Source of the DNA: Azolla caroliniana
Lineage: Eukaryota; Plantae; Polypodiophyta
Length of the DNA: 64,000 bases
Direction of reading: 5' to 3'
NCBI GenBank assembly: GCA_043228905.1
Contig: JBHGNT010000012.1
Coordinates: 17,918,001-17,982,000 of the forward strand
Position 1 is the first letter of the stretch; every line of letters begins with the position of its first letter. The notes below the pieces were generated by a model. The model saw only the letters and a program-made list of their open reading frames with translations, ran no database searches and was not told where the DNA came from. The position numbers and the translations under genes are program-made. This document shows positions 3,878-45,867 of the stretch, one piece after another.

Positions 3878-3964
3878 ATGATCACTCCACGGGTCATGAA
3901 GCGACTGTTGGCGCCAAAAAGTTTGAATTTCCCACGCAAAGCTCGTCGAAGATTCAACCTTCGA

Positions 3965-4226: not shown

Positions 4227-4299
4227 TTATAAAAAAGCTTGACTAGAAAACATGGTCGGATCCTCATGGACAGAAATGTTCTAAACCCGACCCGCACGC

Positions 4300-18530: not shown

Positions 18531-19006
18531 TGTCGTAGTGTAATTCCTCCGGATGGGACAAGGAGGACTCGGTAAGGAGACCCGGGAAGAACTGGATCAA
18601 GCAGAACCAGCAAGAACCGGATAAAGAAGGCCGGTGAGACTCTCTCACCGGATGAAGAGACAAATTTATAAATAGGAAAAAAAAGATTGTTACATGCATA
18701 GGGCATGATTGATCAATCTAATATATTTGTGGGATTCACGAGTTTATCATCAAAATTCTCTTTCTTACAATCCAAATATTGATTAAATACACTAAAAACG
18801 TGGGATTCACAAGTTTTATTTCTTACTTCTCTTTCTACTTATTCATAACTAGCCTTATATTGTATTCTTCTTTCTCCTAGTCCAAAACCTCAGTGGTTCC
18901 CACCCGACTCACGCAACGATCCAGAGCCGAAAGGCACGACAAAAGTGGTGAACCCGACGTGAAACCGGGTGGCAAGGAGGTGGAAAATCAATTGGGGGCT
19001 AACAAC

Positions 19007-20107: not shown

Positions 20108-20545
20108 AGCACCGCGAAAGGCATCCGAGAAGCTATGGGATGGGAGTGTCCCATTGATAAGAATAGTGTACACACCACCCTATGCCAATTGCATGAAGTG
20201 TATGTAGACGAGAAACGACGACGCACGGATGATGCAGTCAAACCATCAAAGACACCGGAAAGCTGGAACTCCAGAGGGAAGGGAAAAGAAAAGACGATTC
20301 CGGCATTCCCACACAGGAAGAAAACTTTCAGAGCAAAACAAGTACGAATTGGTCCGGATGGGGCATCTACGTAAACGGCTGTAACCGGAGGAAAGAAGAA
20401 AGAATACCGAAAAGTAGAGGATAAGTTACGGTCGGCATCAATAATAAAAGAAGATGAAGAAATCGTGGGGGTAATCGAAGAAGTGTTCTCTGGGAGCACG
20501 TTACAATGGCTTGAAGAGCTTGTGGAGGATAAAAGCCAAGGAGAC

Positions 20546-20665
20546 TGTCATGAACAATACTGAGATAGAGAAGGAATTAGTACTAAACGAAGGATTAGTA
20601 CTATGAGAGGTGTGGAACTTCTTCGAGAGAAGGAAGAAGTGAGCGAGATAGAGAGAAAGAGAGAG

Positions 20666-20706
<41 letters not shown>

Positions 20707-23700
20707 TGATAAGAAAGATATGTATTATATGAAGAGAATATACAATGGTGGCTAAAAGGCTTAAGACTGGTGTTGAACCAATTTGGTTCAACATAATGCC
20801 TAGTGCCCTCTTTTATAGTGTTTTCAGGAGTAATCCTGAAGCTTCTAGAATGTTCCAGAGAAATCTGGAATATACACTAATTTCCTATAATAAAATGTAA
20901 ATGAAAATAATATCCTACGTGTTACAATAGATGATCTAATGGTCAAGAGCTCGACTCATATAACCTAAGGTCATGGGTTCGAGTCTCGCCATATCATGAC
21001 ACTATCCCCCCTTTAAAACGACGAGTGTCAAGAGTCGTCTTGGATTGAGGACCTGGTTTGTGTGGATATTGACGATGGAAGTCTTCAAGAAAAGCACGAG
21101 CATTGGTCACATTCTCGATCGGTTCCCAAGTACGTTCGCTGGGGCTATAGCCTAGCCAATCGACTAGATAATAGAGCTTGTTGCGAACAATCTTGGAATC
21201 AAGGATGGCGGCAACCTCGTACTCCGGCCCATCTTCAAGCTCGGTCGGGGGTGGAGGTTGGATAAGACGTCCTGGGATGGTGCTCTCGTGGTAGAGTTCG
21301 AGGAGAGAACTATGAAACACCAGATGTATCCGAAGTTGAGGAGGTAGATCGAGACGAAAAGCGACATCATTAATCTGTCCAATAATACGGAAAGGACCTA
21401 ATTGCCGATAATCTAACTTCTCACATGGACGAGTAGTCTTGATGTGTCGTCATAGCAGCCACACCCGATCTCCAATATTAAAACTGGATGGAAGTCGATG
21501 ACGATCCGCGTAGACCTTGTGTGTTTGTTAAGCTTGCTGGAGATGAGTAGATAAATCCGCTTGTATCTTGCGTAACTGCTCCAAACGATCCTCCGCGCAC
21601 GGATTTGTGGACACCTCTGGGGTTTCAAGTAATCTCCACCAGGGGTGACATCCCGTATAAGCATAAAATGGCGTGACTTTAGTGGATGCGTGGATAGAGT
21701 TGTTATAGGAAAATTCGGCGAAGTGGAGAATATCTGCCCAGTCATCTTGATGATAGCTGAGAAAGCACCGCAGATATTGCTCCAACGTTTGATTTGTTCG
21801 TTCAGCTTGGACGTCGGTTTGTGGGTGGTAGCCAGAGGAGAGGTTACAAGTGACCTTGAGCATGTTAAAAAGGTGCTTCCAGAATTTTGACACGAACTGG
21901 GGTCCACAGTCACTGATGATACTATCGGGAAGTCCATGATGCCGACATACTTCACGCATAACAATTTCGGCAGTGTCTTCACTAGAGATCTCCTTAGTAC
22001 ATGGCAAGAAATGAGCCATCTTCGTATATCGATCGACCACCGTTAGAATCGCATTGAACCCCTTAGAGATTGGAAGATTTGTGATGAAGTCTAGGGCAAT
22101 GGATTGCCACGGCTTGCTTGGAATTGGTAATGGTTCTAATAAACCATATGGATGATGCCTTGGCATTTTCGCTCTGCAACATGTATCACAAGTCCGAACA
22201 AAATCCTTGACAAATTGTCGGATACAGGGCCACCAGAATGTTCGTTGTACTAAATGTAATGTTTTAGTACTATCAAAATGCCCAGCTATATATGTGTCAT
22301 GACAGTTTTGTACTACTTGAAGGCGGCAAGAACCATTAGGAACATACAAAAGTTCTTTAAAGAAGAGCAATCCATCATGGTATTTGAATTGCCGATAGTC
22401 TGTACCTGGTGGTTGCGACTGTGAACACGACGCTCGAGAGGGATCAATTTGTGCTAGTATAGCTTGGGCGAACGCATCTGTCTTCAAGTCTTCACGTATG
22501 GTATCGATAACGCGTGAATCCATAGGCATGTCAAAGATCTGTGTTGCTTGTAGTAGTGCCGGTCCCAAGATGACTTGTTTTTGGTTATCGAAAGCTGGCT
22601 CGCCGAGACAGGGTGCTAGATACGAACGCCGTGATAATGCATCTGCCTTCCCTTGGTGCCTCCCCGGACGATATGTAATTCTGAAGTCAAAACGCGTGAG
22701 GAAGTGGGCCCACCGAGCTTGACGTCGATTCAACACACGAGCATCCTGAAAGTAGGCAAGATTCTTGTGGTCACTAAATACGGTGACTGGATGAGAGGAT
22801 CCCTCCAGAAAATGCCTCCATTGCATAAAAGAATCCACTATTGCCAATAGCTCCTTATCATCAATTTCGTAGTTGATTTCGGCGGCGTCAAACTTGCGTG
22901 AGTGAAAAGCCACAGGATGTAGCTTCTCATCATTCCCCTGTTGTGATAGAATGCTCCCTAATGCAAAATCCGATGCGTCAGCTTCGATAATGAATGGTTT
23001 TTCCGGATTGACATGAGCTAGTATTGGAGCCGATGTAAATGCCTTTTTAAGACTCTCGAAAGCCATGTCCGTTTCTTCAGACCAGATGAACGGTTGTCCC
23101 TTCCTGGTAAGTTGTGTGAGAGGTAGAACGATCTTTGAGTAATCTTGTATGAACTTCCGGTAAAAATTGGCAAAGCCTAAGAAGCATTGCACATCCCGCA
23201 CCGAACGCGGAGTCTGCCATTCTACCACCGTTTTGACCTTAGCTGGGTCAGTGGAGATGCCTTCTGATGAAATGATGTAGCCGAGAAATTCCACTTGGTT
23301 GCACCCGAAACTACATTTTTCCAGCTTTGCATACAGACCATGTTCTTGAAGTCGTTTTAGTACTAATAGTACATGAGAATCATGTTCTTCTTGGGTCTTT
23401 GAATAAACCAGTAGATCATCCAAATAGATGATCAAACAATCATCCAATAGATCTCGGAATATATCATTAGCCATGTGTTGGAAGACTGTCGGCGCATTAG
23501 TGAGGCCGAACGGCATGACCGTATACTCGAAGTGCCCATATCTGGTGCGAAACGCAGTCTTCCATTAGTCTCCTGGTCGGATCCGTACGAGGTTATATGC
23601 TCCCCGTAAGTCGATCTTCGTGAAGAACGTGGCACCATTGATCCGTTCTAAAAGACTTGAGATAAGGGGAAGAGCATACCTATTCCTGATTGTAACCTTA

Positions 23701-25782
23701 TTCAAGCCACGGTAATCTACAACGAGACGAAGCGATCCATCTTTTTATTTGACGAAGAAAATGGGCGCGCCGGCTGGAGATTTCGAATGCCGAATGAAAC
23801 CCTTTTCCAAATTCTCCTCTATATAGGCCTGAAGGACTTCCAGCTCGGTTGGTGACAAATTGTAGATCGGTCCCCATGGCGGCTCTTTTCCCAGTTGTAA
23901 ATCGATGGGGCAATCGTACGGTCGATGATGAGGAAGTGTGTTGGCTTGTACTTTATCGAACACGTCAGCGTAATGACGATACTTCTCGGGAAGTTGAACG
24001 GTGGATTCTTCTTTAGTGGTGCTGGAGGGGTTTACTGATATTGCAAAGAGGAACATTTCCTCCTTGCGCCCTTCTTTACACAACTGACGTAGCGAAATGG
24101 TTGCCATCTTCTGAGTTGACCCTTGGGTTTGTCGACACCGGATTTCTCTTGTTCTCTAATCTATGTCTGGGTTATGTAACTCGAACCATGGTAATCCTAA
24201 AACTATAGGATGTTCTGGGATACTAATAATATTAAATGATACTACACATGCTAAGTTATCTAGGACAATATTAATGGGCTCTAACTCTTCTATGATATTT
24301 CCGGAAGCAATGGGACGTCCATCAATGACTACTACAGAGGCTGGACACTGGAGTTTTCTTAGGGATATCTTATGAGCTTGAGCAAATTTCTTATCCATAA
24401 AGCAAGAGTTAGCTCCAGAATCTAGGAGTGCTAGGACATGTACTGGAGGGGTACTTTTAGTACTAACTATTACTTGGGCTACGAACACATCACTAACTTG
24501 CTTAGAGGGAATGGAACCACTAATGGGCTGCACAGATCTAGGGCTGTCCAACCAAACGGCTCCTATTTTGGCTGGACTTAGTCGTTTAACTCTTCTTCTA
24601 ACTGACTAAGGACATCAAATTTGTTTGCTAGATCTGGGATATTAGTACTATTAGTACTATTAGGACTATCAGATATCCCTACTGAAATAGGCTCGGATTT
24701 AGTACAATTAGAACTAGCGACTATTTGGTTTACTTGTCTTCTTGGCCTATGGGGGCAATTTATTGCGATATGTCCTGGTCCACCGCAGTAAAGACATAGT
24801 CGATTTGTACGACGTCGCTTCTTTTCTTCTTCGGATAATGGCCCTCAACGACGTGTAGTGTCAATCTCCATCGGAGTCGGAGTATTCGCTGGAGGCGCAT
24901 TATATGACTCCCTCGGAAAAGGTCTTGCTACCACTGAGGCGTAGGTGGGCTCTGATCTTGCCCTCGGCATCTGTAGTTGTCGTTCCGAACGTCGCTCAAA
25001 GAGGCGGTTGTCACATCTCACCGCGCGACTGATTGCTTCTGTTAAGGACTTTGGCTCTTCGGGGAAGGTCAATAGTAAATCCTTGACGTCGTTGCGTAAA
25101 CCATAACGGAATTGCTCCATCAACGCTTGATCATCCCAAGGGATATCGGCGGCGAGTAGGCGAAAATCTGCAGCGTATGCGGAGGCTGGACGGTCACCTT
25201 GGCGTAATCGCCGGATTTTGTTGATTGCGGTCCTGATGCTGTCAGTATCTCCGAAACATGCTTTAAACTCACCTAGAAACTCTTCAAAATTGTTGAGTAA
25301 CGGAGATTCCTTTTCTAATAGTGGAGCGAACCATGACAACGTTGAGCCACTTAACAAAGTGCCTACTAAACCCACTTGTGATGCATCGGTGGGATATCGG
25401 GAAGGATGCATTTGAATAACTAATCGTACCTGGTTAAGGAACCCTCTAAACTGCGATCGCGTTCCATCGAACTTCGTGGGAAGGCCAATCTTGGGTTCTT
25501 TATGAATCCCTTGTGTTCCGGGCCCTTGTTGTTGCATCGCTACGATGGTTGCTTCGAGTTGTTGCACGCGTAACGCAAGTTCCCCATGTTGTTGTTGCGT
25601 TTGTTGCTTTTCTAAGGAGATTTGCTGAAGATCCCCCAGCAACCGTTGGTTTTCTTGTTCCAAAGCATGGAACTTCTCCTTCAAGCATTGAAATTCCGAG
25701 AAAACAGATTGATATTCTTCAGTCTTAAGCCTTTTAGCCACCATTGTATATTCTCTTCATATAATACATATCTTTCTTATCA

Positions 25783-25821
<39 letters not shown>

Positions 25822-26172
25822 CTCTCTCTTTCTCTCTGTCTCGCTCACTTCTTCCTTCTCTCGAAGAAGTTCCACACCTCTCATAGTACTAATCCTTCGT
25901 TTAGTACTAATTCCTTCTCTGTCTCAGTACTGTTCATGACAGTTTCAACCAATTTGGTTCAACATAATGCCTAGTGCCCTCTTTTATAGTGTTTTCAGGA
26001 GTAATCCTAAAGCTTCTAGAATGTTCCAGAGAAATCTGGAATATACACTAATTTCCTATAATAAAATGTAAATGAAAATAATATCCTACGTGTTACAATA
26101 GATGATCAAATGGTCAAGAGCTCGACCCATATAACCTAAGGTCATGGGTTCGAGTCTCGCCATATCATGACA
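20546..26172 (-). mobile_element. Chromovirus (Tcn1-like Ty3/gypsy) with gag-PR-RT-RH-IN-chromodomain; TSD GAGAC
   Basis: Termini TGTCATGA...TCATGACA; GAGAC at 20541-20545 and 26173-26177. Intact LTR 20546-21001 with PPT next to 21002. Motifs [33 protein letters not shown] and EYEVAAILDSK...YLVDWLGY...TWEP. Several stops. Confidence 0.95.
20994..21320 (-). pseudogene. Integrase C-terminal chromodomain
   Basis: Aromatic-cage type chromodomain: Y-E-V...YYLVDWLGYSPSERTWEP. Confidence 0.9.
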
Positions 26173-26377
26173 GAGACCGAGTAGTCCCGGTGGAATCGGT
26201 CGAGATGTACGAGATCATTGCGAAAATGCGGCCGGATGCGCTCTGCAAAAAAGAAGCAATGGTAAGGACGAAATACAAGACCATGGAGAAGAAAGTGAAA
26301 CCGGCCGCAGGACCGTTACCACCGATAGCGAGCAAAAGAGGAAAGAAGTCTCGGGACATCTGACACTTCGGAAGTCC

Positions 26378-27362
26378 GTGGATATCGGACATGCCTTCAC
26401 GGATGAGACCTGGAAGAAACTTCAAATCGATGGAGGTGGTTTCCTTTTACAAAATGAAGAAGAAAGATTCCATGGGATGTTGGAACAACATGGAAAAGCA
26501 TTTGCATTCACATTAAAGGAGATAGGGTGCGTTGATTCGAAGATAGTGGAGCCAATGGTGATCTTCACAATTGACCATGTGCCGTGGAACCTGAAGCCGA
26601 TTCTGGTGCCGTGGGCGCATATTCCCAAAATCATCGACTTGCTCAAGGAGAAGGTGGTGACGGGGATTCTAGAGTCATCAAACGCTCTGTACTCAAATCG
26701 ATGGTTTATGGTTCCGAAGAACAATGGGTCACTCCGATTTATCCAAGACTTGCAACCGGTGAACAAGGTCACGATCTGGAACTCCGGAGTCGGTCCGATA
26801 ATGGACGAATTTGTGGAAGCATTTGCCGGTCATGCGATATACTCCATCGGAGACCTATACTCAGGGTATGACCAATTCCAACTAGTAGTGGAGAGTCGAG
26901 ACATCACTACCATGCGGACACCGATAGGATTAGTCCGAATGTGCACACTACCACAAGGAGCGACAAACTCGGTTGCACATATGATGAACACGATGAACAA
27001 GGTGCTTCGAGATTGCATTCCGGAGATAACGATGCCGTTCCTAGATGACATTTCGATGAAAGGATGCGCGGTAGAAGAAAAAGATGAAACTATGGATGAT
27101 CGGGGATGCCGAAAGTTCGTAGTCAACCATGTTCGTGATTGCAAGAAAGTGCTTCGAAAATTGGAAGATGTACACCTAACACTTTCCGGGGAGAAATCAA
27201 CATTCGGGCAAGAAGAGATATTGGTAGTCGGGCATCTATGTGGGCCCTACGGCCGAAGACCGTCACCAACCAAGATTGATGCGATTCAAGCTATGAGAGA
27301 AGTATGTGAGTCACAATCCGAAGTCCAAAGGTTTCTTGGAGCGTGTGCATTCTATCTTGTAT
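26378..27362 (+). pseudogene. Gypsy reverse transcriptase, truncated
   Basis: LRFIQDLQPVNKVT, DLYSGYDQF, LPQGATNS and PFLDD motifs. Homology ends at FLGACAFY. Confidence 0.9.
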
Positions 27363-28190
27363 GGATTTGGCGTAGGACCAAACTTGAATTCTAGCCTCTA
27401 AAAATTCCATTTGGATTGTCATAGGAGTGGCTCGGTAGTAATAACCCTAGAACTTCTTGGTGGATGGGGAAATGGGATTTTTATAGTTACTACTCAACTA
27501 ATGTGGTCCATATGTTACTTAAAATTGCACCAACACACATTTGACAATTCCCAAAACAAGTAAATTTTAGAGAAATAACTTAAACTAAATATTGACAACA
27601 CTTATAACTCATGTGGATTACAATGGGGTTTTGGGAAAACAGACGAATTTTACATTGGATTTTCCGTAATTAACCCTTCACATAGGGTGAGAAGAGATTT
27701 GATAAGGAAGAGCATAGGGGGGATATCCTTGAGTTTCAACTTTACGAGTCTACGATTGACGACTTCGTTGTAGCCCTTGTGGTTTACTAACCCACGAAAC
27801 TTTGTTTGTTGACAAAGATTGGCGTTTAAATCCCCAAAACCAATGAGCCCCAATTTGAGCTCTCTTGTACATTATATAGATGCTATAGAGCTCTCTTGCC
27901 AAATAAAAATAGTATTATCTCTTTCTAAGTCAATCACGGTTGATTTCTCTCTCTTTTTTTCTTCTTTTTTTATTTATTTATCAAAACTATCATCCATTGG
28001 TTTTTTTTTTTTCCAAAATGAAGCTACTTTCCCATTAGTTAGGAAGGATTATTACATAGAGAGTCTACAAGGAGACTTATACACACATCGGGGAGTCTAC
28101 CTCCGATCAAGTAAAAGAAGATCAGCCTACTTACAATGCCTTGCGGCCTAACTTAATGTAAGAAGCTACCTATATCTAAGGCGATGGCCT

Positions 28191-32496: not shown

Positions 32497-35400
32497 CCGA
32501 AAGCGGTGACGTTGACGCCCATGTTCGGGCTGATCCCCATGTTAAGGGGCAACCTAACACCTATTTCAAGGGGTATGGTCTCCACAGCAGGCTTCAAATC
32601 CCCTACGAGATTCTCAGCCGGTCATTCCCGACCCGCTTCAAATAGATCCCGCGATACATTTGTGCTCCGAAGCGGTGGCACCTCTTGCATCCCTCTATCT
32701 AAGAGAGGCGTCGCCAAACCAGGTGTTGGTCGGCCTATCTTACCCTTTCCCTTGTACTTGAGCTTGCCCGTCCGGATCCACGATTTCACTAATCTGAGGC
32801 CACTACCACCTTCACGTTCCAACGGGAGGGGGGGGTTTGCCAACTTCTCATCCGGGGTGGATGGTACGAGTTGGGGTTGCATCTCCATCGGGGTAGAGAA
32901 CACAAGTTCAAGCTCTCGTGGGGCAAGGCATGAGGAGTCGCATGGGGACAACATTGCTGCCAGCGCTTCTAGGTCGCCATCCCCTAACCCTTGAAGAGGT
33001 GTAAATTTGTTGGTAGCTCTCACCTGTAGGTCGGGTGCATCAACACTCCCGGAGAGGATCTTTACCCGTTTCAAGGGTTGCTCATCCGCGCTTTCTGGTG
33101 ACAAGGTAGAGGGACTTCTTTCAAAGGGGTGGTCACGAAAAAGGGTGGAAGAGGATGCACCTAGGCCTCCAAGTTTCCCCTTCTTCTTAACGGGTATCCA
33201 AGGAGCCTCGTCACCCTTGGTTGGCCCGACTTTGCCCGAGGGTCGAGGTCCCGAGCTTCCCTTTCCAATCTTGCGAGGACACACCTTAGCTAGGTGTCTT
33301 GTCTGTTTGCAAATGAAACACTGCCCCGGAAGTCCCTCGTAAACCACTTTCACCACTGTGAGACCTAGCTCCTCAGAGTAGAGTCTAATCCTTGATGGAA
33401 GTCCTTGGAGGGAAGGCACCAAGATGCGCAACTTGGGCACCTCCGCAACTGTGTCTGCCATTGACACTTTTTGAGGACATATCATCCCTATTTCTTCGCC
33501 AAAAAGAGGGAGCAGATGGCACAAATGAGGAGGGAGGCCGGGAAATGTTGCGTTGATCACCATAGGGTTGTTGAGTTTCCGTAACTCTTTGTTGAGAGAC
33601 AAGCTCAACATCGGCCGGATCGGCTGAAGAAGCCGAGGACCGGATCGGTTGGACCAATCGGTTAGGCCGAGTGCGTAAACCGGGAGGCCGTTAGGAAAGA
33701 TATTCCGTGAGGAATATATTTGGGAGTTAGTGTAGGAGCTCTTAATGAGCATTGAAGTACTGTCAGTACTTTTGTCGGTCCTTCTAGGACTTGTATAAAA
33801 GTGTTCATTGAACACACATATGTATAGAGTGTGGTGAATAGAGATTGTTGTTGTTGAATATAGTTCGTGTGTTTTCTCTCTCTCTCTCTCTCACTCTCTC
33901 TGTCTCTCCCGCATATACTGCGTAAGCTCAAGCTCTCCATTGACCCTGAGTTTTCTTCCTCCTGTTCGGTCTTCACACTTGCTTCCGCACGTTACTTTTC
34001 ACATGGTATCAGAGCGCGAGGGTTGAGAACCTCTCTGCAGCCGACACAGCTTGACGAAGAAGAACAAGAAGAACGATGGATAGAAGCATGGCGAGCTCGC
34101 TTCCAACAGAGAAGCTCAACAGAACCAACTATGCGTCTTGGTCCTACAAGATGCACCAGTACCTGCTCGGGCACGGCTACTGGAGTTATGTCGAAGGAGC
34201 TAATGACGCGGCACCCGAATCGACACACAAAGACTTCCTGTCGTGGGAGCAATCGGCAAGCAGGGTATTATACTGCTTCGCGTCGTATGTGGGCGAACAA
34301 CTATTGAGCTATGTTCGGGATGCAAAGACGCCGAAGGGTGCGTGGGAAAATCTGAAGAAGATTTTTGTCGTGAGCACCACAGCCAAGAAGCTTTAGCTCC
34401 GACAGGAGTTGAGCAACCTACGACAACGCGACTTGTCGGTGGCGGACTATACCTTGAAGATCAAGGATATCTGCGACTCCCTCGCCTCCATAGAGGTGAA
34501 CATCGAGGAGAGCGAGATGGTCCAGATCTGTCTTGGAGGTTTGGCGTCGAAGTTCGGAGCGTTCCGAACGGCTGTGTGTACCCGGGAGAATACGTTGTCC
34601 TTTTTCGACTTACAGTCAATGCTCCTGGTAGAGGAGAACCACGCGAGTGCGTCTACAAGCACGCACACCGACAGCAAAATGTTGTACACAGAGGGAGATA
34701 GGCCCCGTGGACGTGGAGGACGAGGCGAGTCGGCGCGCAATGGAGGTGGCCGACGAGATCAAAGAAGAAGGCACCTAAGTGATGCCGATAGCAACTCCGG
34801 ACCCTCCGGAAACAGGGGGAGTCAAAGCGATGAGAACCGGCAAGGGAAGGCCATCGCGGAGTGCTGGTACTGTGGCAAGAAAGGCCACAAGGAAAGTGAG
34901 TGCTGGAAGAAGCGCGCCGATTCGGAGAGAACCGGTTCCGGAAACGGCTCCAGACATACCGACAAGGGAAATCGGCAGCGATCGCACTACGCCGAAGACT
35001 CCGGGAGAGCCGGAGAAGGGTCTGCCTTCGTGACGAGACACGAAGCAAACTCAATAAAACAGACCACCCCGAGATCGAACGAGGTGTGGTACGTAGACTC
35101 CAGAGCGTCAAACCACATGACGAGCCATAAGGAGTGGTTCTCGTACCTTGAAAAACCAATACAACCTGGAGTAGTCGCAACTGGAGACGACACTCCGCAT
35201 CCAATCGCGAATGTCGGAGAAGTTCCCCTTAGCCATGTTGGGCAGAAAGGGAAACTCATGAACGTGTTGCACGTTCTGACAATCACGAAGAACTTGGTCT
35301 CGGTCGGACAGATCGTCAACCAAGGGATGGAGGTTCGGTTTACACACCTCGGGTGCTTCATTGAGGAAGAAGGCCATGTGATTGCGCAAGGGCACAGAGA

Positions 35401-37444
35401 CGGGAGGATGTTCATCCTCGACTCCACTGACGGCGGCACCGCAATGTTCGCGAAGGGACAAAAATCCGAGTCGAACATCGACTTGTGGCACAAGCGGATA
35501 GGCCACGTCAACTACCAGCGGCTTCAAGATCTGCAAACGAAACAGGTAGTGTTCGGATTGCCCAAATTTAGTGGCCGAAAGGAAAAAATTTGTGAAGCCT
35601 GTCAGCTCGGGAAGCAACACCGACTTCCCTTCCCCAACGAGCGAAAGCGGAGCCGGAACAAGCTCGACCTTATACACTCCGATGTATGGGGGCCGGCACA
35701 AAACGTTAGTCTTGGCGGGAGCCGATTTTCGTCTCCTTCATTGACGACCACACGCAGCACACGTGGATCTACCTCATTGAGAGGAAGAGCGAAGTCTTCG
35801 ACTGTTTCCGGGACCTCAAAGGGTTCGTGGAAACGGAAACGGGACGAAAGATCAAGTGCATGCGGTTGGATGGCGGGAAAGAGTACTTTTCTGGTCAATT
35901 CAACGGTTATCTACAACAAATGGGAATTCGGCACGAATTCAGTTGTAGATACACGCCAGAGCAGAATGGCGTGGCCGAGAGGAAGAATCGGTCAATTGTG
36001 GAAGCGGCACGGGCAATGTTGGAGGAGAAGAGCTTGCCCAAGTTCTATTGGGCCGAGGCGGTAAGGACCGCGGTATACATCCAGAACCGGATTGAAGACA
36101 AAGTGTCGGCGCACGAGCTATATTTCGGAACGAAGCCGAACTTGCGACACTTGAGGGTGTTTGGTAGCATTGCGTATGTGCATGTACCGAAGGAGAAAAG
36201 GAGGAAGCTGGACGCAAAGGCCGAGAAATGCATCTTGGTCGGTTACTCGGACGAGCAGAAGGGTTATAAGTGCTGTAACCCTCGCACCAAACAAGCGCGT
36301 GTTAGCCGCGACGTTGTGGTTGACGAGCCCGCGTCCTGGTACCAGCCCCCGACTCCGAACCCCGACTCCAATCCGTGTTCTGACGATGAGGTCAGCGAGG
36401 CCGAGATGCCTCCGGATGAGCCCGAAATCGAGACCTGCGAAGAGAGTCTGATTTCACTCCACTTAAGTGGACCGATTGGACGACTGAGTCGGTACGATCA
36501 GTCCGATGAAGAGCCGGCGAGTAGTGGAGACTCGGCCGTGCATTCCCCGCGTAGGAAGCCGAGGAGACGGCTTACGCGCAAAGAGAAAGGGAAGAAGAAG
36601 GTGTCGAATTCCGGCACGGATAAGAACAAGTCAAACCGACGTGAGTCCGACTCCGAGGGAACCGGTGACGGGTCTTTAAAGATGAAGACCGCATCGACCG
36701 AGAAGGCCTCGACATCGGCTAATGTGAGACTACACCGATCTACCCGCCAGAAGAATCCAGTTTTGCGGTGTCGTGAAGATTTTCGTCCATAGGCGGAAAA
36801 CCGAGCGAAGCAAGCAAACCCGCGATGTGCAACGTTGCACATCAACATGTTGTATTTCTATTTATCGATAGTGATAAGTGTGGTGCTAGAAATGCACCTT
36901 AGGATTTGTAAAGTGTAAAGGTGATGTGCTTTTGCGCGCACATCCACGTGAGAAAGAGAGATAGGTACATAGTAGTTCGTGTAGAGGTGGGAGTTAAGAC
37001 CCATCCTTCCCACCTCCCCTAAAATCAAGGGAAATATCCCCATTGATTGAAAGGGGATATTTTGTAGCACCTTTATGTAACGGTCTTCCCTCCTTGTGCT
37101 ATAAAGGGAGAGGAAGAGCACCATTGTGGGGGTTGCCTATTTTGAGTGCGAAAGGTATACCACATAGGACGAGCGTTAGGTTTAGGGTTTCTTTCTTCTT
37201 CGTCGGATTAGGGTTTCGGGTTTATCATAGTCGTTCGGTGCGGCCTACGCGGCCGCCATTTTGTAATCGGTTTTCGGTTCTAATATATCTTGTTAGCATT
37301 TTGCCTCCATCTTCCTCTTGTTCATTCTTTCTCTTCTTGTGCTAAGCTCCATTCCGAAGTCCTACTCCTTCCCCCCTTCTCCTTAGTCCAAGACCCCCGT
37401 GGTTCCGCCCTTCTCCACGCACGCGCGTAACAACGCGACATCTT

Positions 37445-37462
37445 TGGTGAACCCGACGTGAA
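37445..37462 (+). promoter_or_regulatory. Primer-binding site complementary to cytosolic tRNA-Trp
   Basis: TGGTGAACCCGACGTGAA is the reverse complement of the plant tRNA-Trp 3' end TTCACGTCGGGTTCACCA. An identical site lies at 18946. Confidence 0.88.
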
Positions 37463-37482
37463 AGGCGGCAAGGGAGAAAGAG

Positions 37483-40400
37483 ATGGAAGAAGGCTTCGAC
37501 TCCGAGGAGATGTTGGCAAAGATCTTGATGGACGCCGGACGGAAGAGGGCGAGGCGAGAGGCGGCTCAACAAGCGGTCGAAAGGGTGGTCCGTCTAGTCG
37601 GCCGGTTCGATGGGAAGGAGGTCCCAAAATTTTTGAGAGCCTACGATGCGGAAATGACGGGGATGGGCGTGGACGAAGCGACGAGGCCAGAGTTCTTTCG
37701 TCGAGCGGCGGCCGCATCAAAGTACGAGGAGGTCAAGGAGCTCCAAGAAGCTCACGAATCGTGGGAGTCCTTTGAAGGGGCTCTAATGGAGGCATACGGG
37801 TGCGCGGAATCGGAGGTAAGAGGTCGGCGAGAATTCGATCGGTGGGTGGCGTCGGCGAGGCGCCATCGGAGCGCAATAAAGGCATTCCGAGAGTTCGAGC
37901 GTCGTTTCTCTCAACTCTCGGAGTGGGAACGAAGATCGGTGGGGGCGGACAAAGTCCTCCTATTTTTGAAGACGGTCCATCATGAGGAGAGGATGGACAT
38001 CATGATCGAGCTTCAAGACGATTATGGGGCGCATGGTCTCACCGAGGAGTGGCCCGAAGTAGAACGGGTGTGCCGACAACATGATAAGAGGTGGTCGGCC
38101 ACAACACGACCCGCGAGCGGCGGAGAAGAGAGGGCGGTGGGCGGCTACACACCACCGCCGGAAGAGAGCTCGATGCACGACCAACCGGAGGAGTACGACT
38201 TCGAGGCGTTGGTATGGGAGGCGTGCGGGCTCGTAATGGCGAAAATCGAAGCCGAAGAATGGCTTATTGCGGGGTCGGGCCCGAGCGGATCGGAGGACGC
38301 GGAGGAAGGAGCTTCCTCACACATGGAGGACGGGGCCTATGCGGAGGCCGAAAGAGAATGGTACATCGGTACCACGGGAGAGGGTGCGGAGCGAGCCGCC
38401 CTCTCGACATGGGGGAAAAGAACGACCGAGGACGAGGTCGGGGACGGTGAGGCGGCGATCGCCGATTCGAGCGGACATGGCGGATTCGGGACATGGTGGC
38501 CCGAATCATCGAGTACGGAGGAGACAAGCGGCGGTACCGCAACCTTCCACGCACCGGTTCAAGAGACCCCGGCGGCCGGCCCGAGCGCCCACGTGAGACC
38601 GAGGGAAAAGAACGGTGGCGGCAGCAAGGCGGGCAACCGAGACAACGGTAAGGAGACCGCGGAAGAGGCGGCGGCGAGCATAACCGATGCTTGCATATAT
38701 GGAGGCGGGGTAGCCACGGACAACGACGTTCGAGCGGAGGTGGCTACGGACATTACATCGACGAGCGGCGGTCACGCGACCTTACACGCGTCATTCCTAG
38801 AGATCACGGCGGCCGGCCCGAGTGCCCGCGTAAGACCTATGGTGAAAGGCGGTGGCGGTGGCAAGGCGGGCGACCACGGTGTCGACACGAGAGAAGGTGC
38901 GGGGCAAGCGACCGTCTCATCTCGGGGAAAAAGAACGGCCATGGACGAGGCCGATATCTACGGAGCGATGGACGCCACTTCGAGAGTGGGCGGAAGTTTC
39001 GGGACGCGGTTGCCCGAAACGTTCTACGAGGATTTCGCGAGCATACTCGAGGCTTGCGAAATGGAGGAGGAAGAGGAGACGAGCGTCGGTGTCGCGACCT
39101 TCCACACACCGGCCCTAGAGGCTTCGGCGGTCGGCCCGAGTGCCGGCACGAGACCTAGAGCTACGGACGGTGGCGGCGGCAAGGCGGACAACCGAGATAA
39201 GGACGAGTCCGGCGAAGAAGAGGCGGCGGCAAGCATACTCGATGCTTGCGAAACCGAAGACGGGGTAGCCACGGACGACGATGTCCGAATGGAGGTGGCT
39301 ACGGACGAGAGGAGTGGTGGTGTCGCAACCTTCCACACACCGGTCCTAGAGACTCCGGCACCCGGCCCGAGTGCCGGCACGAGACCTAGAACGACGGGCG
39401 GTGGCGGCGGCAAGGCGGGCAAACAAAATGATGCGGAGAACGGCGAAGAAGAGGTGGTGGCAAGCATACTAGAGGCTTACGGAATCGGAGATGGGGGAGC
39501 CGCGGACAACGACGTCCGAACGAAAGCGGCTACGGAGACAACAAGCGGCGGTGCCGGGTCCTTACCCACACCAATCCTAGAGGCTCCAATGGCCGGCCCG
39601 AGTGCCGGCATGAGGCTTAGTGCGACGGGAGGTGACGGCGGCAAGGTGGGCAACGAAAACGAGAAGGAAGATTGGAGCGGACGGAGGCAAGACCCCTTGA
39701 CACCGGGGCCGGAGACTTCGGCGGTTGTGCTCGAATGCCAACGTGAGACCGGAGAGATGGGCGGTGACCGTGAGGAGGTGAGGCCCGGAGAGAGCGCATA
39801 CGAAGACGAGTATGCGGGGCCCGGAATGGGCGTATACGGTGGGTCCGGCGGAGAGGACCGGAGCGGAAACGAGGAGAGAGTCGGGAACCGACCCGACCGG
39901 AATACGGCACGGAAGAAGAAGAGAGTAAGGGCCGGCGAACCGGGCCCAAACCGAAGGAAGCCGGCGAGACCGATTGGCCGGTTACGGTTACGGTTACGGT
40001 TACGTTGGGAGCCGGTAAGCGCGAGATGGAGGCTAACCGGGCACGACGACCATGGTTCGGGGGAAAAACGGAAACAAACGAGACCCTCCATACCCACTCT
40101 AGAGACTACGGCGGTTGCGGATCAACATAAGACCGGAGAAACGGCGGGTGGCGGCGAGGAGTCGGAGGCCGGAGCGTACGAGGTTGCCGGAACGGATATC
40201 CGGTACGAGATGGTGGACGGGTGGGTCCAAGACGGCGAGCCCGTGTCGGAACGGGCTACGGCGACAAAGGAGGAGAAGACCGACACGGAGGTCGGGTCTA
40301 CGACGGAAGAGCGAGACGAGATGCATGCAATACGGCCGATGGAGGGCCAAGACACATGCATGCCTACGAAGGAGCCACATCGTGCGACCGAAGGTGACGG

Positions 40401-41463
40401 TCGGATCACGCCTTCGAGAGGCGAATACGAGGAGGAAGGCGACGACGACGAGACCTGGCACGATGCTAGGGAAGATTGGTGGGAAGAGGTGGCCTACGGA
40501 GAGGCTAAGACCGGCGGCCACGAAGATAAGGCCCGAGAGGGATCCTCTACACCGGCTATAGAGACTCCGGCGGTCGGCGCGAGTGCCGACGTGAGACCAA
40601 GAGTGGCGGACGGTGGCGGCGAGGGGACGAAGGCCACAACGGATGAAGGCACCGAGAGAGGCATACGGGAGGTCGCGGAGAACGAAGATGTATGCCCCCA
40701 AAAGAACGAACACAACATCACGAAGGATGTGTACGGTCGAGCGGGCCAAGAGGGCCAAGAGGGTGTTCCTCCGAGCGAAACGGAGGTCGGGGAAGAAGGG
40801 TACCTTTCCGAAAGGGTACGCGAAGAGGAGCGGAATGCGAAACGTGCAATGCGGCCGCATGAGGGCCAAGCAACGAGCACGGGAACGATGGTATGCTCTA
40901 CGGCGAGAGAGCACGGCAAGCAAAGGGAAGGCGAAAAATGCGTGATGGGGTCATCGAAGGACCGAAGCACGAGCACGCATTCGGAGGACGACACCGACGT
41001 ACGGGGAAAGCCTACGGAAGGCAAGCGCGGAGCGAGAAGAGTCGGCACGACGAGGTGCGCGGCACGAAAAAGGCGGATCCGGAGGATATACGAGGCGGAC
41101 AAAGGGTCGGCAACGGCGTTCGGGAGGACCGATCGGGGAAGAAAGCGCGGGCATCGGAAACGGCGGTCCGGATGTAGACGGTGGTTCGAGGAATCACGGT
41201 GGACGTGGCGGATCGGGTGGAGGCAACGACTCGGCGAACGTCGTCAAGTGTGGCGGATCGGATGGAGCCGACGGTTCGAGACCATTCGGCGGAGATGGTG
41301 GGCCGGAAGGCGACGGTGGTTCGTGTGGACGGGGTGGACTTGCTCGAAGTGGAAGACGAAGCCGGGCAAGCCCACGAGGTTGTCAAGGGCTCGGTTGGCC
41401 GCCTTGGCCGAAAATCTCGCGTTTTGTTCCCCTTTTGGCACATACCGGTGGATGTGCGGTTAG
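37483..41463 (+). CDS. 1326-aa Gag-like protein with long acidic Gly/Ala/Thr-rich tandem repeats
   Basis: Uninterrupted ORF from just after the PBS to the PPT. The N-terminal ~200 aa align with Gag 19007-20107. Repeat unit of about 77 aa. Confidence 0.8.
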   Translation: MEEGFDSEEMLAKILMDAGRKRARREAAQQAVERVVRLVGRFDGKEVPKFLRAYDAEMTGMGVDEATRPEFFRRAAAASKYEEVKELQEAHESWESFEGALMEAYGCAESEVRGRREFDRWVASARRHRSAIKAFREFERRFSQLSEWERRSVGADKVLLFLKTVHHEERMDIMIELQDDYGAHGLTEEWPEVERVCRQHDKRWSATTRPASGGEERAVGGYTPPPEESSMHDQPEEYDFEALVWEACGLVMAKIEAEEWLIAGSGPSGSEDAEEGASSHMEDGAYAEAEREWYIGTTGEGAERAALSTWGKRTTEDEVGDGEAAIADSSGHGGFGTWWPESSSTEETSGGTATFHAPVQETPAAGPSAHVRPREKNGGGSKAGNRDNGKETAEEAAASITDACIYGGGVATDNDVRAEVATDITSTSGGHATLHASFLEITAAGPSARVRPMVKGGGGGKAGDHGVDTREGAGQATVSSRGKRTAMDEADIYGAMDATSRVGGSFGTRLPETFYEDFASILEACEMEEEEETSVGVATFHTPALEASAVGPSAGTRPRATDGGGGKADNRDKDESGEEEAAASILDACETEDGVATDDDVRMEVATDERSGGVATFHTPVLETPAPGPSAGTRPRTTGGGGGKAGKQNDAENGEEEVVASILEAYGIGDGGAADNDVRTKAATETTSGGAGSLPTPILEAPMAGPSAGMRLSATGGDGGKVGNENEKEDWSGRRQDPLTPGPETSAVVLECQRETGEMGGDREEVRPGESAYEDEYAGPGMGVYGGSGGEDRSGNEERVGNRPDRNTARKKKRVRAGEPGPNRRKPARPIGRLRLRLRLRWEPVSARWRLTGHDDHGSGEKRKQTRPSIPTLETTAVADQHKTGETAGGGEESEAGAYEVAGTDIRYEMVDGWVQDGEPVSERATATKEEKTDTEVGSTTEERDEMHAIRPMEGQDTCMPTKEPHRATEGDGRITPSRGEYEEEGDDDETWHDAREDWWEEVAYGEAKTGGHEDKAREGSSTPAIETPAVGASADVRPRVADGGGEGTKATTDEGTERGIREVAENEDVCPQKNEHNITKDVYGRAGQEGQEGVPPSETEVGEEGYLSERVREEERNAKRAMRPHEGQATSTGTMVCSTAREHGKQREGEKCVMGSSKDRSTSTHSEDDTDVRGKPTEGKRGARRVGTTRCAARKRRIRRIYEADKGSATAFGRTDRGRKRGHRKRRSGCRRWFEESRWTWRIGWRQRLGERRQVWRIGWSRRFETIRRRWWAGRRRWFVWTGWTCSKWKTKPGKPTRLSRARLAALAENLAFCSPFGTYRWMCG

Positions 41464-42455
41464 GTGGGGGCGGATGTCGTGAAGATTTTCGTCCATAGGC
41501 GGAAAACCGAGCGAAGCAAGCAAACCCGCGATGTGCAACGTTGCACATCAACATGTTGTATTTCTATTTATCGATAGTGATAAGTGTGGTGCTAGAAATG
41601 CACCTTAGGATTTGTAAAGTGTAAAGGTGATGTGCTTTTGCGCGCACATCCACGTGAGAGAGAGAGATAGGTACATAGTAGTTCGTGTAGAGGTGGGAGT
41701 TAAGACCCATCCTTCCCACCTCCCCTAAAATCAAGGGAAATATCCCCATTGATTGAAAGGGGATATTTTGTAGCACCTTTATGTAACGGTCTTCCCTCCT
41801 TGTGCTATAAAGGGAGAGGAAGAGCACCATTGTGGGGGTTGCCTATTTTGAGTGCGAAAGGTATACCACATAGGACGAGCGTTAGGTTTAGGGTTTCTTT
41901 CTTCTTCGTCGGATTAGGGTTTCGGGTTTATCATAGTCGTTCGGTGCGGCCTACGCGGCCGCCATTTTGTAATCGGTTTTCGGTTCTAATATATCTTGTT
42001 AGCATTTTGCCTCCATCTTCCTCTTGTTCATTCTTTCTCTTCTTGTGCTAAGCTCCATTCCGAAGTCCTACTCCTTCCCCCCTTCTCCTTAGTCCAAGAC
42101 CCCCGTGGTTCCGCCCTTCTCCACGCACGCGCGTAACAACGCGACAGCGGTTCGGATACAACGAGTACATGGCGCATCATTATGCGTACATGACTCGTGT
42201 AGCGGAAGTGCGTGAGCCGGAGAGCTACGCAAAAGCGGCTAAAGACGCGAATTGGCATGCCGCGATGGAGGAAGAGATGCACGCATTGGCGGAGAACGAG
42301 ACCTAGGACCTGGTTGACGCACCAACAGGGGTAAAACCGATCAGGTGTAGGTGGGTGTACAAGGTCAAGTACAACACTGATGGCTCGGTCAACCGGTACA
42401 AGGCTCGGCTAGTGGCAAAGGGCTACGCGCAGAAACACGGCATCGACTACGATGA

Positions 42456-43308
42456 GACATTTGCGCCGGTCGCGAAAATGACGACCGTCCGTGTTTTGCT
42501 CGCAGTAGCCGCGGCCAAGGGGTGGCACCTACATCAAATGGATGTAAAGAATGCGTTCCTGCAAGGTGACCTTGAGGAACAGGTGTACATGGTACAGCCC
42601 CCCGGATTTCATTCTGGAACGAACTCCTCGGCAATATGCCGACTGAAGAAGTCCCTTTACGGACTGAAGCAAGCCCCGCGTGCCTGGAACGCGAAGATCA
42701 CGCAACAACTGCGTCGGATGGGCTTCGTCACGTCAAAATCGGACTCTTCCCTGTTCATCCAGAAAGGTCGACTTGGACCGGTTAGTATTTTACTATATGT
42801 TGATGACTTGGTCAGCACCGGCGCCGATCTACGTGAAATCGACCGCGTGAAGCTCCAACTTGCGGCATCGTTCACGGCATCGTTCGACATTTGCGCCGGT
42901 CGCGAAAATGACAACCATCCGTGTTTTGCTCGCAGTAGCCGCGGCCAAGGGGTGGCACCTACATCAAATGGATGTAAAGAATGCGTTCCTGCAAGGTGAC
43001 CTTGAGGAACAGGTGTACATGGTACAGCCCCCCGGATTTCATTCTGGAACGAACTCCTCGGCAATATGCCGACCGAAGAAGTCCCTTTACGGACTGAAGC
43101 AAGCCCCGCGTGCCTGGAACGCGAAGATCACGCAACAACTGCGTTGGATGGGCTTCGTCACGTCAAAATCGGACTCTTCCCTGTTCATCCGGAAAGGTCG
43201 ACTTGGACCGGTTAGTATTTTACTATATGTTGATGACTTGGTCAGCACCGGCGCCGATCTACGTGAAATCGACCGCGTGAAGCTCCAACTTGCGGCATCG
43301 TTTGACAT
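42456..43308 (+). repeat. 430-bp-period tandem duplication inside the copia RT
   Basis: GACATTTGCGCCGGT... starts at 42456 and again at 42886. About 6 transitions between the copies. Confidence 0.95.
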
Positions 43309-45867
43309 GAAGGATCTGGGGAACCTTCATTACTTCCTCGGGATCGAAGTGATCCGTACCCCCGAAGGCATATTGATCAGCCAACGTCATTACGTGCTGG
43401 GTATGCTCTTCAAACTCGGGATGGCCGACTGTAAGTCCGTCTCAATTCCTCTAGACAGAACCGTCAAGCTTCGTCCCGATACGGGAAAGGTATGCGACCC
43501 GAAGAGGTTCCGACAAATTGTTGGAAGCCTCATATACTTGACCATCACCCGACCCGACCTCAGTTATCCGGTCGGAGTGATCAGTCAATTCATGGCGCGA
43601 CCTACCGAGGAGCACCTTCAGTGTGCGCAACGCATACTTCGGTATGTCAACGGCACTAAGGACCAGGGACTGCTATATCAGACTGGTGCAGCCGCGCAGT
43701 TAGTCGGCTACACCGATGTTGATTGGGCTGGCAACGCCGCCGATCGTCGATCCACGTTCGGATACGCGTTCTCCCTCAGGAGTGCCGCGATCGCGTGGAG
43801 CAATAAGAAGCAGCCGACATTTGCACTGTCGAGCACCAAAGCTGAGTACCGAGGAGCGGTTGTCGCGACATGCGAAGCCATATGGTTGAAGCGGCTCCTT
43901 AAGGATCTGCAGGTGGAGGTGTCCGATCCAACGACGATCTACTGCGACAACCTCAGTAGCATCCAGCTCGCGAAAAACCCTGTTTTCCACGCACAGACCA
44001 AGCACATTGAGGTGCACTACCATTTCGTCTGTGAGCGTGTCCTTTCCGGTGAAGTCGAACTTCAGTACGTTCCGACGGATCGGCAGACTGCCAACATCTT
44101 CACCAAGCCTCTTGGTCTGGACAAGTTGCGGCAATTCTCAGGTGCACTCGGATTGCGTCACCTCGACGTGCCGAACTTGAGGGGGAGAACAGTCCCGAAC
44201 GACCAAGCAAGGCAGCATGAAAGGAGCGGAGACCGAGACACCGAGTCGGTTGACTCGGTTGTCGAGTTCGACTTCGGATCGGCTAAAGAAGCCGAGGGCG
44301 GACCCGTGGAAAAGTCCGGAAGCGGACAAAAGGGGAGCAATCGAAGGAGAGAGCCGAAGCCAACCACGCATGGGGAAGATGATGCCACCAAGGGCGAGAA
44401 GACCGAAGACGAGTTGGAGACAGCCAACTCGGACGAGAGCGAAAACCGATCGGAGGTAGCCGAGTCGGTTCGGATGGTTGATTCAGATACGCTGAATCAA
44501 CCGAGGCCCAAGGGGAAGAAAAGGCAGCAGGAGAAGCGTCAACACCGCAACAGCAAAAGAGCTGATAAGGGCCACATGAGCAGACAAGCCGACTGGAAGG
44601 GTCGAAGCGCGCGGTGTCGAACAGGTCGAGGAGCGCGAGCGAGGCGTGAAGCCAGGAGGAACCAGAGCTGTGAGCCCGGAGATCCCGAACAGCCTCAAGT
44701 TGAGCTTGAGGGGGAGTGTTGAGAGACAAGCTCAACATCGGCCGGATCGGCTGAAGAAGCCAAGGACCGGATCGGTTGGACCGATCGGTTAGGCCGAGTG
44801 CATAAACCAGGAGGCCGTTAGGAAAGATATTCCATGAGGAATATATTTGGGAGTTAGTGTAGGAGCTCTTAATGAGCATTGAAGTACTGTCAGTACTTCT
44901 GTCGGTCCTTCTAGGACTTGTATAAAAGTGTTCATTGAACACACATATGTATAGAGTGTGGTGAATAGAGATTGTTGCTGTTGAATATAGTTCGTGTGTT
45001 TTCTCTCTCTCTCTCTCTCACTCTCTCTGTCTCTCCCGCATATACTGCGTAAGCTCAAGCTCTCCATTGAACCTGAGTTTTCTTCCTCCTGTTCGGTCTT
45101 CACACTTGCTTCCGCACGTTACTTTTCACACTCTTCAATCGGATTGAACCCTGGTGACCATGGCTGAAGCAACACCTTGCCGTACTTTAGTTCGAGTACC
45201 TTGAGCTCGACCAGTGGTTGCGCCAGCAAGCCATTACCTAATTCGATGTGGAAGAAGTTTTTCCCTAAACCCCTGACACTCTTGATCACAGCCATGTTCT
45301 CCATCACAGCCACCTGGAACATGTCCCGAACCATTCCCTGACTTGGTCTACCTGCCAAAAACCTACATATGAAGGAGGTACGCCGTAGACGTTCGATTTC
45401 CTCCAATAAGAAACGGTTGGCCTCAGGGGACAACGTAATGTCGAGATCTGAACCACCTTCTTCATCGAGCAAACGGGTCGTTGGTGGAAGCACGATTCCT
45501 CCCTCCATAGCGAGTTATGTGTCTTGTGAGGCTATCTATGTAGGTCTTCCCCTCCCCCTTTGTTTTGTGTGTTTTTTAATTAATTAATTAATGTACGTTT
45601 TCTGGTTGGGGGATGGAGGGAGGATTGTGGGTGTGGGAGTACCTGGACAACAGCTGGCGTTGTGCTCCTGCTCCTGCTCTGGTGGACAGCGCGCGCGTTC
45701 TTCATCCTGCACCTGCACCTGCACCTGCGCCTACTCCTGTTCGCCCTGTCTGCGCGCCCTGTTCTGCTACTCCCACTCCACGCTCTGCTGTTGCTCGCGC
45801 TCCCGCATATCATCCATCGGTATTAAAATTAAAGTGGACAATATTCAAGATAATCCAATATTACAAT

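Follow-up and report, generated by a model that had tools for sequence, protein, structure and literature searches.

How does a long terminal repeat (LTR) retrotransposon without pol keep a single reading frame of 1326 codons open, when most of the protein it encodes appears nearly free to change? The question is raised by an element at positions 36769-42146 of a 64,000-nucleotide stretch of Azolla caroliniana (Polypodiophyta) DNA (GenBank assembly GCA_043228905.1, contig JBHGNT010000012.1, positions 17,918,001 to 17,982,000 of the forward strand). We refer to the whole stretch as the window, and coordinates are those of the window unless a contig is named. An initial annotation, made by a model from the sequence alone, had described the element as very young and pol-less, with an interior consisting of one Gag fused to a giant repeat tail. 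Our analysis indicates that it is probably a member of a non-autonomous Ty3/Gypsy family that has lost pol, encodes a capsid-type Gag with a tail predicted to be disordered, in a frame that is selected to stay open, and depends on helper elements for its mobility.

A recent insertion with one ORF and no pol

The element comprises 5,378 bp, made up of two LTRs and an interior occupied by one open reading frame (ORF). The LTRs, the target-site duplication (TSD), the primer-binding site (PBS) and the G-rich polypurine tract (PPT) before the 3' LTR are those expected of an LTR retrotransposon, and all were recovered as initially annotated.

36765-36768 and 42147-42150: target-site duplication GCGG, the same four bases on both sides
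36769-37440, + strand: 5' LTR, 672 bp, TG..CA, one mismatch to the 3' LTR
37445-37462, + strand: PBS, TGGTGAACCCGACGTGA(A), 4 nt past the 5' LTR
37483-41463, + strand: ORF of 1326 amino acids (aa), filling the interior, with its TAG at 41461-41463 at the PPT core
41435-41474, + strand: 40-nt pre-LTR block, with the ORF stop inside it and the G-rich PPT core at 41462-41474
41475-42146, + strand: 3' LTR, 672 bp, TG..CA, aligned to the 5' LTR

The two LTRs are distinguished by a single A/G difference over 672 bp, which would place the insertion ~0.05-0.1 million years ago if plant-like substitution rates are borrowed. The element inserted very recently into an older Copia element (33590-45016, + strand, LTR repeats 98% identical), between integrase and reverse transcriptase (RT) and in frame. 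The gag, pre-integrase and SH3 domains of the Copia (Pfam) lie upstream of the insertion and RVT_2 lies downstream, and the integrase-side and RT-side frames are in register once 5,378 + 4 bases are subtracted, as established by frame arithmetic and by separate translations of the two unjoined sides. The RT region of this Copia also carries a 430-bp tandem duplication (42456-43185, copies 99% identical), which accounts for the two overlapping RVT_2 ORFs found there.

The 5' LTR has a TATAAA at LTR position 332 (37100-37105), and no ATG is present between it and the start of the ORF. The ORF opens with the predicted transcript's first AUG, which stands 21 nt past the PBS and has the context GAGATGG. 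The second-longest ORF of the interior has 274 aa, in keeping with the annotated limit of about 275 aa for all other frames. The PBS is presumably of the tRNA-Trp type, judged by the 3' end of plant tRNA-Trp; the window itself contains no tRNA gene and no match to an Rfam family.

Pfam searches of the ORF, both entire and cut in three, and of the 10 longest off-frame ORFs found no family, and tblastn with the pol of a related autonomous element (L017, described below) gave no match inside the element. A degenerate pol, one of two findings that the initial annotation had named as overturning it, was thus not detected in any frame, and the description of a young pol-less element holds.

The frame is kept open by selection

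Related copies were collected by protein searches of public assemblies and by a Gag-domain scan that takes no account of whether the tail is intact. Every copy derives from a metagenome contig, the sources being two ENA studies and one JGI sample. For each copy, ORF length is that of the frame opened by the first ATG after the PBS.

L027a: 618 aa
L027b: 721 aa
L010: 895 aa
L017b: 1051 aa
L003: 1188 aa
L030b: 1226 aa
L001 and L004: 1419 aa each
L002: 1518 aa
L029a: open over the 1095 aa available

The ORFs of the family thus span 618-1518 aa in interiors of ~1.9-4.6 kb, and the family has lost protease, RT, RNase H and integrase; a single ORF is kept. The frame ends anywhere from ~125 nt before the 3' LTR to ~90 nt inside it. 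Eleven of the 14 long copies are open, the broken ones being L029b, L030a and L008. Ten short contigs at 1-6x coverage have stops within Gag, whereas intact forms lie on contigs at 12-59x and the contigs at 36-59x are intact, a pattern that is expected if single old copies decay and multiplying lineages stay intact.

About four fifths of the 1326-aa ORF is a non-Gag tail of ~1,100 aa. As T makes up only 11-12% of this tail, the long frame might be a compositional accident of a non-coding, purine-rich, T-poor interior of the kind found in large retrotransposon derivatives (LARDs), and the tail's ratio of nonsynonymous to synonymous substitution rates (dN/dS), which is close to that of off-frame controls, fits such an origin. 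Nevertheless, not one stop interrupts the tail in frame, the other plus-strand frames contain 19-22, and dinucleotide-preserving shuffles of it (n=2000) gave 30.8±5.1 stops, with a minimum of 15. The short forms, which are richer in AT (T 18%, A 32-34%), likewise have 0 stops in the tail frame against 22-29 off-frame, and at least six diverged subfamilies are all still open. When neutral divergence was simulated from the window copy with the observed distances (17-29%) and substitution spectrum, 12-19 new in-frame stops arose per pair and none of 1000 runs ended with zero, the number observed. The shuffles, the simulation and the AT-richer short forms rule out a chance ORF, and a compositional accident is hardly credible.

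Over the first two thirds of the ORF, the indels between copies are multiples of three, including 228, 231, 240, 279 and 459 nt, and those of 231, 240, 279 and 459 nt change the repeat copy number in frame; in the last third, non-triplet indels are present and are compensated locally. The frame of the tail is kept open by selection in the lineages that go on proliferating. The initial annotation had accepted in advance that common stops or frameshifts in other copies, together with a dN/dS near 1, would speak against a meaningful frame. The tail is indeed close to neutral in the window's subfamily, but stops and frameshifts are rare among the proliferating lineages.

The N-terminus is a Gag capsid domain

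Judged by homology and substitution pattern, aa 1-215 (37483-38127, + strand) are a true capsid domain of Gag, on which purifying selection acts. The first 228 residues of the ORF are 30% identical over 228 aa (E 2e-27) to the neighbouring ORF at 18893-20104, a similarity that the initial annotation had noticed and whose quoted motifs are present, and the N-terminus is 32% identical (E 2e-23) to the Gag of L017 ORF1. A profile of the domain, run against 1.8 billion cluster representatives, matched 770 proteins, of which the long members are Gag-DUF4100-protease ORF1s. In DNA-level alignments, aa 1-215 show a dN/dS of 0.34-0.41 in frame and 1.1-1.8 off-frame, and third codon positions change at twice the frequency of the first and second. 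Constraint is somewhat stronger in the C-lobe (0.12-0.32) than in the N-lobe (0.19-0.48).

The AlphaFold (AF2) model of the domain is all-helical and two-lobed, with 11 helices and a predicted local distance difference test score (pLDDT) of 79. The top Foldseek matches were dArc, Copia, Ty3, PNMA2, PEG10 C-lobe and HIV capsids, metavirus ORF1 and caulimovirus coat proteins, all of them with E >0.05 and whole-chain template modelling (TM) scores of at most 0.3; against PDB sequences, the best match of the Gag profile reached only E 0.33. The modelled fold looks capsid-like, although no single structural match is significant.

The CCHC zinc knuckle, which is present in the neighbouring Gag and in L017 ORF1, is absent from the 1326-aa ORF, as had been annotated. 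Three high-coverage subfamilies have lost more: Gag residues 27-108, most of the capsid N-lobe, are missing, with the long ORF retained. These forms (L003 / P0005, L010 / P0004 and L017 6908-10060) carry an in-frame 228-nt deletion, and their leftover C-lobe is still constrained. On a 38.8-kb JGI contig (P0128), a predicted protein of 4007 aa has 20 separate stretches that each match the Gag profile at positions 80-119, perhaps because a piece of the family Gag was multiplied in tandem.

A repeat-expanded and predicted disordered tail

Downstream of the capsid domain, the following segments can be recognised, the two basic ones from the charge profile.

38128-38472, + strand: post-capsid segment, aa 216-330, aligning to P0007 up to ~aa 325 with 44% identity
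38518-39655, + strand: in-frame tandem units of 231-237 nt (77-79 aa), five recognisable cores at 38523-39655
39883-40182, + strand: basic patch, aa 801-900, net charge +11, with Lys/Arg runs
41083-41382, + strand: Arg/Trp-rich basic C-terminal region, aa 1201-1300, net charge +26

The post-capsid segment is conserved across subfamilies (dN/dS 0.41-0.79). The only helix predicted in the tail lies within it (aa 240-258), and apart from this helix the tail is predicted to be disordered, with a mean pLDDT of 31.7. The tail had been described as an acidic, disordered-looking array of repeats. Disorder is supported by the prediction, but the tandem units account for only about a third of the tail, and the acidic stretches (aa 200-800 and 900-1100) are accompanied by the basic patch and the basic C-terminal end. 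The tail grew through in-frame duplication of 77-aa units.

In the window's subfamily, the tail as a whole carries no sign of selection on individual residues. The repeat region alone gave a faint signal there, with a dN/dS of 0.65-0.73 compared with 0.91-0.96 off-frame, and the comparison of two short forms revealed a modest constraint over the tail (0.49 vs 0.72-0.78). A few short peptide motifs recur across subfamilies. At the DNA level, the last ~600 nt of the interior are the best conserved. They include a 45-nt motif (41194-41283) that encodes W-R/W-I-G-W and contains TGG(C/T)GGATCGGATGG, and that almost all subfamilies carry in 2-3 copies close to where the interior ends on its 3' side; no region resembling these repeats lies between pol and PPT in the autonomous relatives. 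As the motif is equally conserved at all codon positions, selection on protein and on nucleotides cannot be separated there. Folding z-scores of 0.01 and +1.9 revealed no special RNA structure in the conserved 3' part and in the leader, respectively.

With regard to its origin, the tail showed no similarity by tblastn to the autonomous interior or to the rest of the window, and no profile similarity to the nucleocapsid/DUF4100/protease half of the autonomous ORF1 (hhalign probability 0.1%), so a derivation from these sources is rejected. The lack of resemblance to the interior of autonomous elements would suit the capture of a host gene (transduplication) that still does its original job. This is very improbable, since a search of 5.8 billion proteins returned only members of the pol-less family, no Pfam domain is present in the tail, disorder is predicted all through it, and the short basal forms already bear tail motifs. 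Domestication of a Gag by the host is at odds with the LTRs, the TSD and the many diverged copies with their own LTRs.

An old family sharing cis signals with autonomous relatives

The pol-less Gags group in a single clade (support 100/99) on a long stem, in which the short forms are basal, and the family is old and diversified, with at least six subfamilies. The PBS and the PPT are conserved throughout. A solo LTR of the family (9591-10253, - strand, TSD ATGT) is CpG-decayed and 71-76% identical to the young LTR; this divergence and its position in CpG-depleted DNA show the family to be a long-standing inhabitant of this genome. The TSD has 4 bp in both readable cases (GCGG and ATGT).

Two observations concern exchange and arrangement within the family. 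The window copy differs from L001 by 12-14% over aa 201-330 (38083-38472) and by only 1-3% elsewhere, which suggests, on sequence divergence, a recombinant patch exchanged between subfamilies. In addition, family members occur in chains of LTR-interior-LTR-interior in L017 (1-11723), L027 (1-5560), L029 and L030. In L017 a pol-less element comes after an autonomous one, and in L027 and L030 two or three pol-less interiors stand in a row. These chains may be real tandem structures or assembler walks through shared LTRs; tandem LTR-retrotransposon structures are common in plants (PMC11899658).

The assignment to Ty3/Gypsy is made through autonomous relatives that carry the Gag family and the cis signals of the pol-less element. 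Parts of such relatives are present in the window.

353-1654, + strand: 3' end of an autonomous relative that the edge of the window truncates, with pol C-terminus (353-901), PPT block (968-1006) and LTR (1007-1654)
18531-20308, + strand: 5' part of a neighbouring autonomous relative, with LTR (18531-18941), PBS (18946) and Gag with CCHC (18998-20308)
26175-27367, + strand: RT belonging to the neighbouring autonomous relative, 71% identical at the aa level to residues 143-489 of L017 ORF2

The pol C-terminus at 353-901 is 69% identical at the aa level to residues 962-1147 of L017 ORF2. L017 itself is a complete autonomous element from a metagenome with two ORFs, ORF1 (709 aa) encoding Gag, CCHC and DUF4100 and ORF2 (1147 aa) encoding RT, RNase H and integrase. 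The layout of the autonomous clade is Gag-CCHC-DUF4100-protease in ORF1 and RT-RNase H-integrase in ORF2, and the domain order RVT_1, RNase H, integrase is found in L017 ORF2 and in a contig of GCA_015689235.1. L008, which at 47% identity appeared to be a closer autonomous partner, was rejected as such, being a pol-less variant with a frameshift; no closer partner was found among the elements recovered.

In the neighbouring relative, Gag and RT are separated by a nested minus-strand Gypsy (~20541-26172). This nested element belongs to a different lineage, its pol being 22-23% identical to that of the family, and is bounded by both direct (20773/25944) and inverted (20541-20769 vs 25946-25720) repeats, an unusual arrangement.

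The signals required in cis are shared closely between the pol-less and the autonomous elements. The PBS 17-mer recurs identically at 18946 in the neighbouring relative, giving two matches in the window where 0.11 are expected, and the PBS with its 4-nt spacer is the same in all fetched family members and in L017. The LTR start TGTCGTGAAG and the LTR end ..CGCGACA are common to both groups, as are ~65 nt at the end of U5. The LTR tips and the 40-nt pre-LTR block are 84-91% identical between the groups: LTR tips and PPT block of the relative at 353-1654 are 87-91% identical to those of the young element, and the 40-nt block is 84-89% identical to its autonomous counterparts (968-1006; L017 5996-6035). 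Given the same PBS, U5 end, LTR tips and 40-nt block, the pol-less element is likely mobilised in trans by autonomous relatives. Its RNA would be transcribed from the 5' LTR and translated from the first AUG, and the Pol of a helper would reverse-transcribe and integrate it by recognising the common signals. The true helper may lie outside the elements sampled.

Possible roles of the protein

Our leading, though tentative, proposal is that the element supplies, in this protein, its own packaging adaptor or capsid subunit. Its capsid domain, above all the better conserved C-lobe, would dock into Gag lattices, and the basic Arg/Trp-rich end would take over RNA holding from the lost zinc knuckle. 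Between them, the acidic disordered middle would serve as a tether, in which length and composition matter and sequence does not. Such a sequence-free tether would explain why stops and frameshifts are selected against without selection on residues.

Several results weigh against this proposal or against the helper-dependent family in which it is set. Between the window copy and L003, the tail changes equally at the three codon positions (0.161/0.161/0.160), and in the window's subfamily the tail dN/dS is 0.80-0.97, compared with 0.68-1.0 off-frame. The Arg/Trp end has a dN/dS of 0.6-1.5 and equally conserved third codon positions, so that a role of the nucleotides fits as well as a role of the protein, and the richness in Arg, Gly and Glu follows from purine-rich DNA whatever the frame. 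Since the three subfamilies lacking the N-lobe have spread, an intact N-lobe is dispensable for spread. The nearest autonomous Gags found are only 30-35% identical, which makes co-assembly uncertain, and the LTRs of the two groups do not align outside the tips and the last ~65 nt, so their promoters are not shared. Finally, most of the family was recovered from metagenome assemblies, in which repeats are collapsed.

Another possibility is that translation itself is what matters. Long 3' untranslated regions (UTRs) trigger nonsense-mediated decay in plants. If ribosomes have to travel through the interior up to its 3' end, any premature stop would create a 3' UTR of >3 kb and expose the genomic RNA to this or a similar surveillance, in-frame gain or loss of repeats would be tolerated, out-of-frame changes would be purged and the tail protein would be incidental. 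The tail, which evolves like the off-frame controls yet gains no stops, behaves in this way, as do the triplet or locally compensated indels, the ends of the ORF in every subfamily (~0-125 nt before the 3' LTR, or ~90 nt inside it) and the preservation of the frame even where the capsid N-lobe is gone. The N-lobe deletions and the third-position conservation of the C-terminal motif both favour such shielding of the RNA over an adaptor. It leaves the existence and expansion of the tail unexplained, however, since deletion of the tail would serve equally, and forms of 618-719 aa do coexist with the long ones. Moreover, judging from the TATA at LTR position 332, the 3' UTR (U3+R) would still have ~500 nt with the stop at the PPT. 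The constraint in the short-form tails (0.49 vs 0.72-0.78) and the persistence of short peptide motifs also speak for an adaptor, and we consider RNA shielding on its own rather unlikely. More doubtful still is interference, an alternative raised in the initial annotation, in which the protein would be a dominant-negative or copy-number factor that poisons helper particles through the capsid C-lobe, like Ty1 p22/p18. The C-lobe is the best conserved part (dN/dS 0.12-0.32), natural N-lobe-deleted forms exist, and a long acidic extension inside the particle could compete with nucleic acid. Yet the family itself reaches tens of copies per subfamily on the same helpers, so a protein blocking them would block its own spread, and its Gag is only 30-35% identical to theirs; interference is thus improbable.

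We therefore rank the adaptor or capsid subunit first, RNA shielding second and interference third, the first two being compatible with each other. A broader statement, which we hold to be somewhat unlikely, is that the frame is kept open independently of the residues encoded, either as "coding as armour", in which translation as far as the PPT would guard the genomic RNA, or as an adaptor whose tether depends on length and charge and would bring the parasite into helper particles. If true, either would amount to a limit on how transposons evolve and a way of hijacking helpers that are so far undescribed for LTR elements. The ORF sets a constrained capsid domain beside ~1,000 codons that are strongly selected to stay open and whose residues, in the large forms, are without detectable selection. 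This contrast makes "must be translated" separable from "must be this protein" in a way that can be tested experimentally. It also carries a warning for annotation: such ORFs will be called giant orphan proteins, and a near-neutral dN/dS alone does not prove a frame meaningless.

Other features of the window

The flanks of the element have 34-37% GC and a CpG observed/expected ratio of 0.35-0.5, with CpA+TpG in excess. This excess and the CpG ratio correspond to decay through CpG methylation, and fungal repeat-induced point mutation was ruled out as the cause of the AT-rich flanks. A minisatellite with 18-nt units in at least 13 copies lies at 3931-4272. An intact ORF of 706 aa (55519-57639, + strand) is present in DNA of 30-38% GC; neither a Pfam family nor, among 5.8 billion proteins, a homologue was found for it. 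Its N-terminus has the motif V-P-F-x-W-E-E-x-P-G-R-P, which resembles one of land-plant proteins. This motif and the 2008-era UniParc identifiers of two Gag relatives hint weakly at a land plant, perhaps a bryophyte.

Comparison with known elements

The initial annotation had not recognised this architecture. Non-autonomous elements that encode a Gag have nevertheless been described, in RLG_Quinta (PMC11302176) and in TR-GAG (PMC4350172), and there is growing recognition that such elements are of major importance in plant-type genomes and are under-annotated. RLG_Quinta of wheat is a non-autonomous Ty3/Gypsy family whose single ORF comprises GAG plus a domain with no known function, without RT and integrase; it was paired with RLG_Cereba because the two have an identical PBS and conservation extends to their LTR termini and PPT, and "semi-autonomous" GAG-encoding families are known in Triticeae (PMC11302176). 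The pol-less element resembles RLG_Quinta in having GAG plus an extra part and no RT or integrase, in the features that link it to its partners, and in belonging to an old lineage with subfamilies and recombination. It shares PBS, LTR termini and PPT with its relatives but not the LTR-internal, regulatory sequence, which in such pairs would point to co-expression. It further differs in that its extra part has ~1,100 aa, is repeat-expanded, predicted to be disordered and nearly unconstrained, in that it lacks the zinc knuckle and its ORF reaches the PPT, in the Gag identity of 30-35% to the partners found, and in its 4-bp TSD and tRNA-Trp-type PBS.

TR-GAG elements have LTRs, PBS, PPT, TSD and one Gag-only ORF, and are regarded as still active although they lack enzymes (Chaparro et al. 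2015, PMC4350172). By definition they measure <4 kb and their ORF is essentially a GAG precursor (PMC4350172). The pol-less element likewise has a single Gag-homologous ORF and no enzymatic domains, although ~80% of this ORF is non-Gag and the element, at 5,378 bp, is longer than the size limit. According to a 2026 survey, the categories of such elements blur together (PMC13570524). With LARDs, the element shares a length of >4 kb, the lack of pol, a probable mobilisation in trans and a conserved interior. In contrast, the interior of LARDs is non-coding, whereas here it is an ORF that is selected to stay open and includes a constrained Gag domain.

A different parallel is offered by Ty1 p22/p18, truncated products of autonomous elements that limit copy number. 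These are family-encoded Gag fragments centred on the capsid C-lobe, as in the N-lobe-deleted forms described here, but the protein of the pol-less element is no truncation: it is the complete product of a non-autonomous lineage that is distinct and proliferates. The element thus fits the known kind of GAG-encoding non-autonomous elements, outside the size limit of TR-GAG. It differs from these in the size of its non-Gag part, the growth of this part by repeats and its predicted disorder, the lost zinc knuckle, an ORF that spans the interior, and the demonstrable split between selection for an open frame and selection for sequence.

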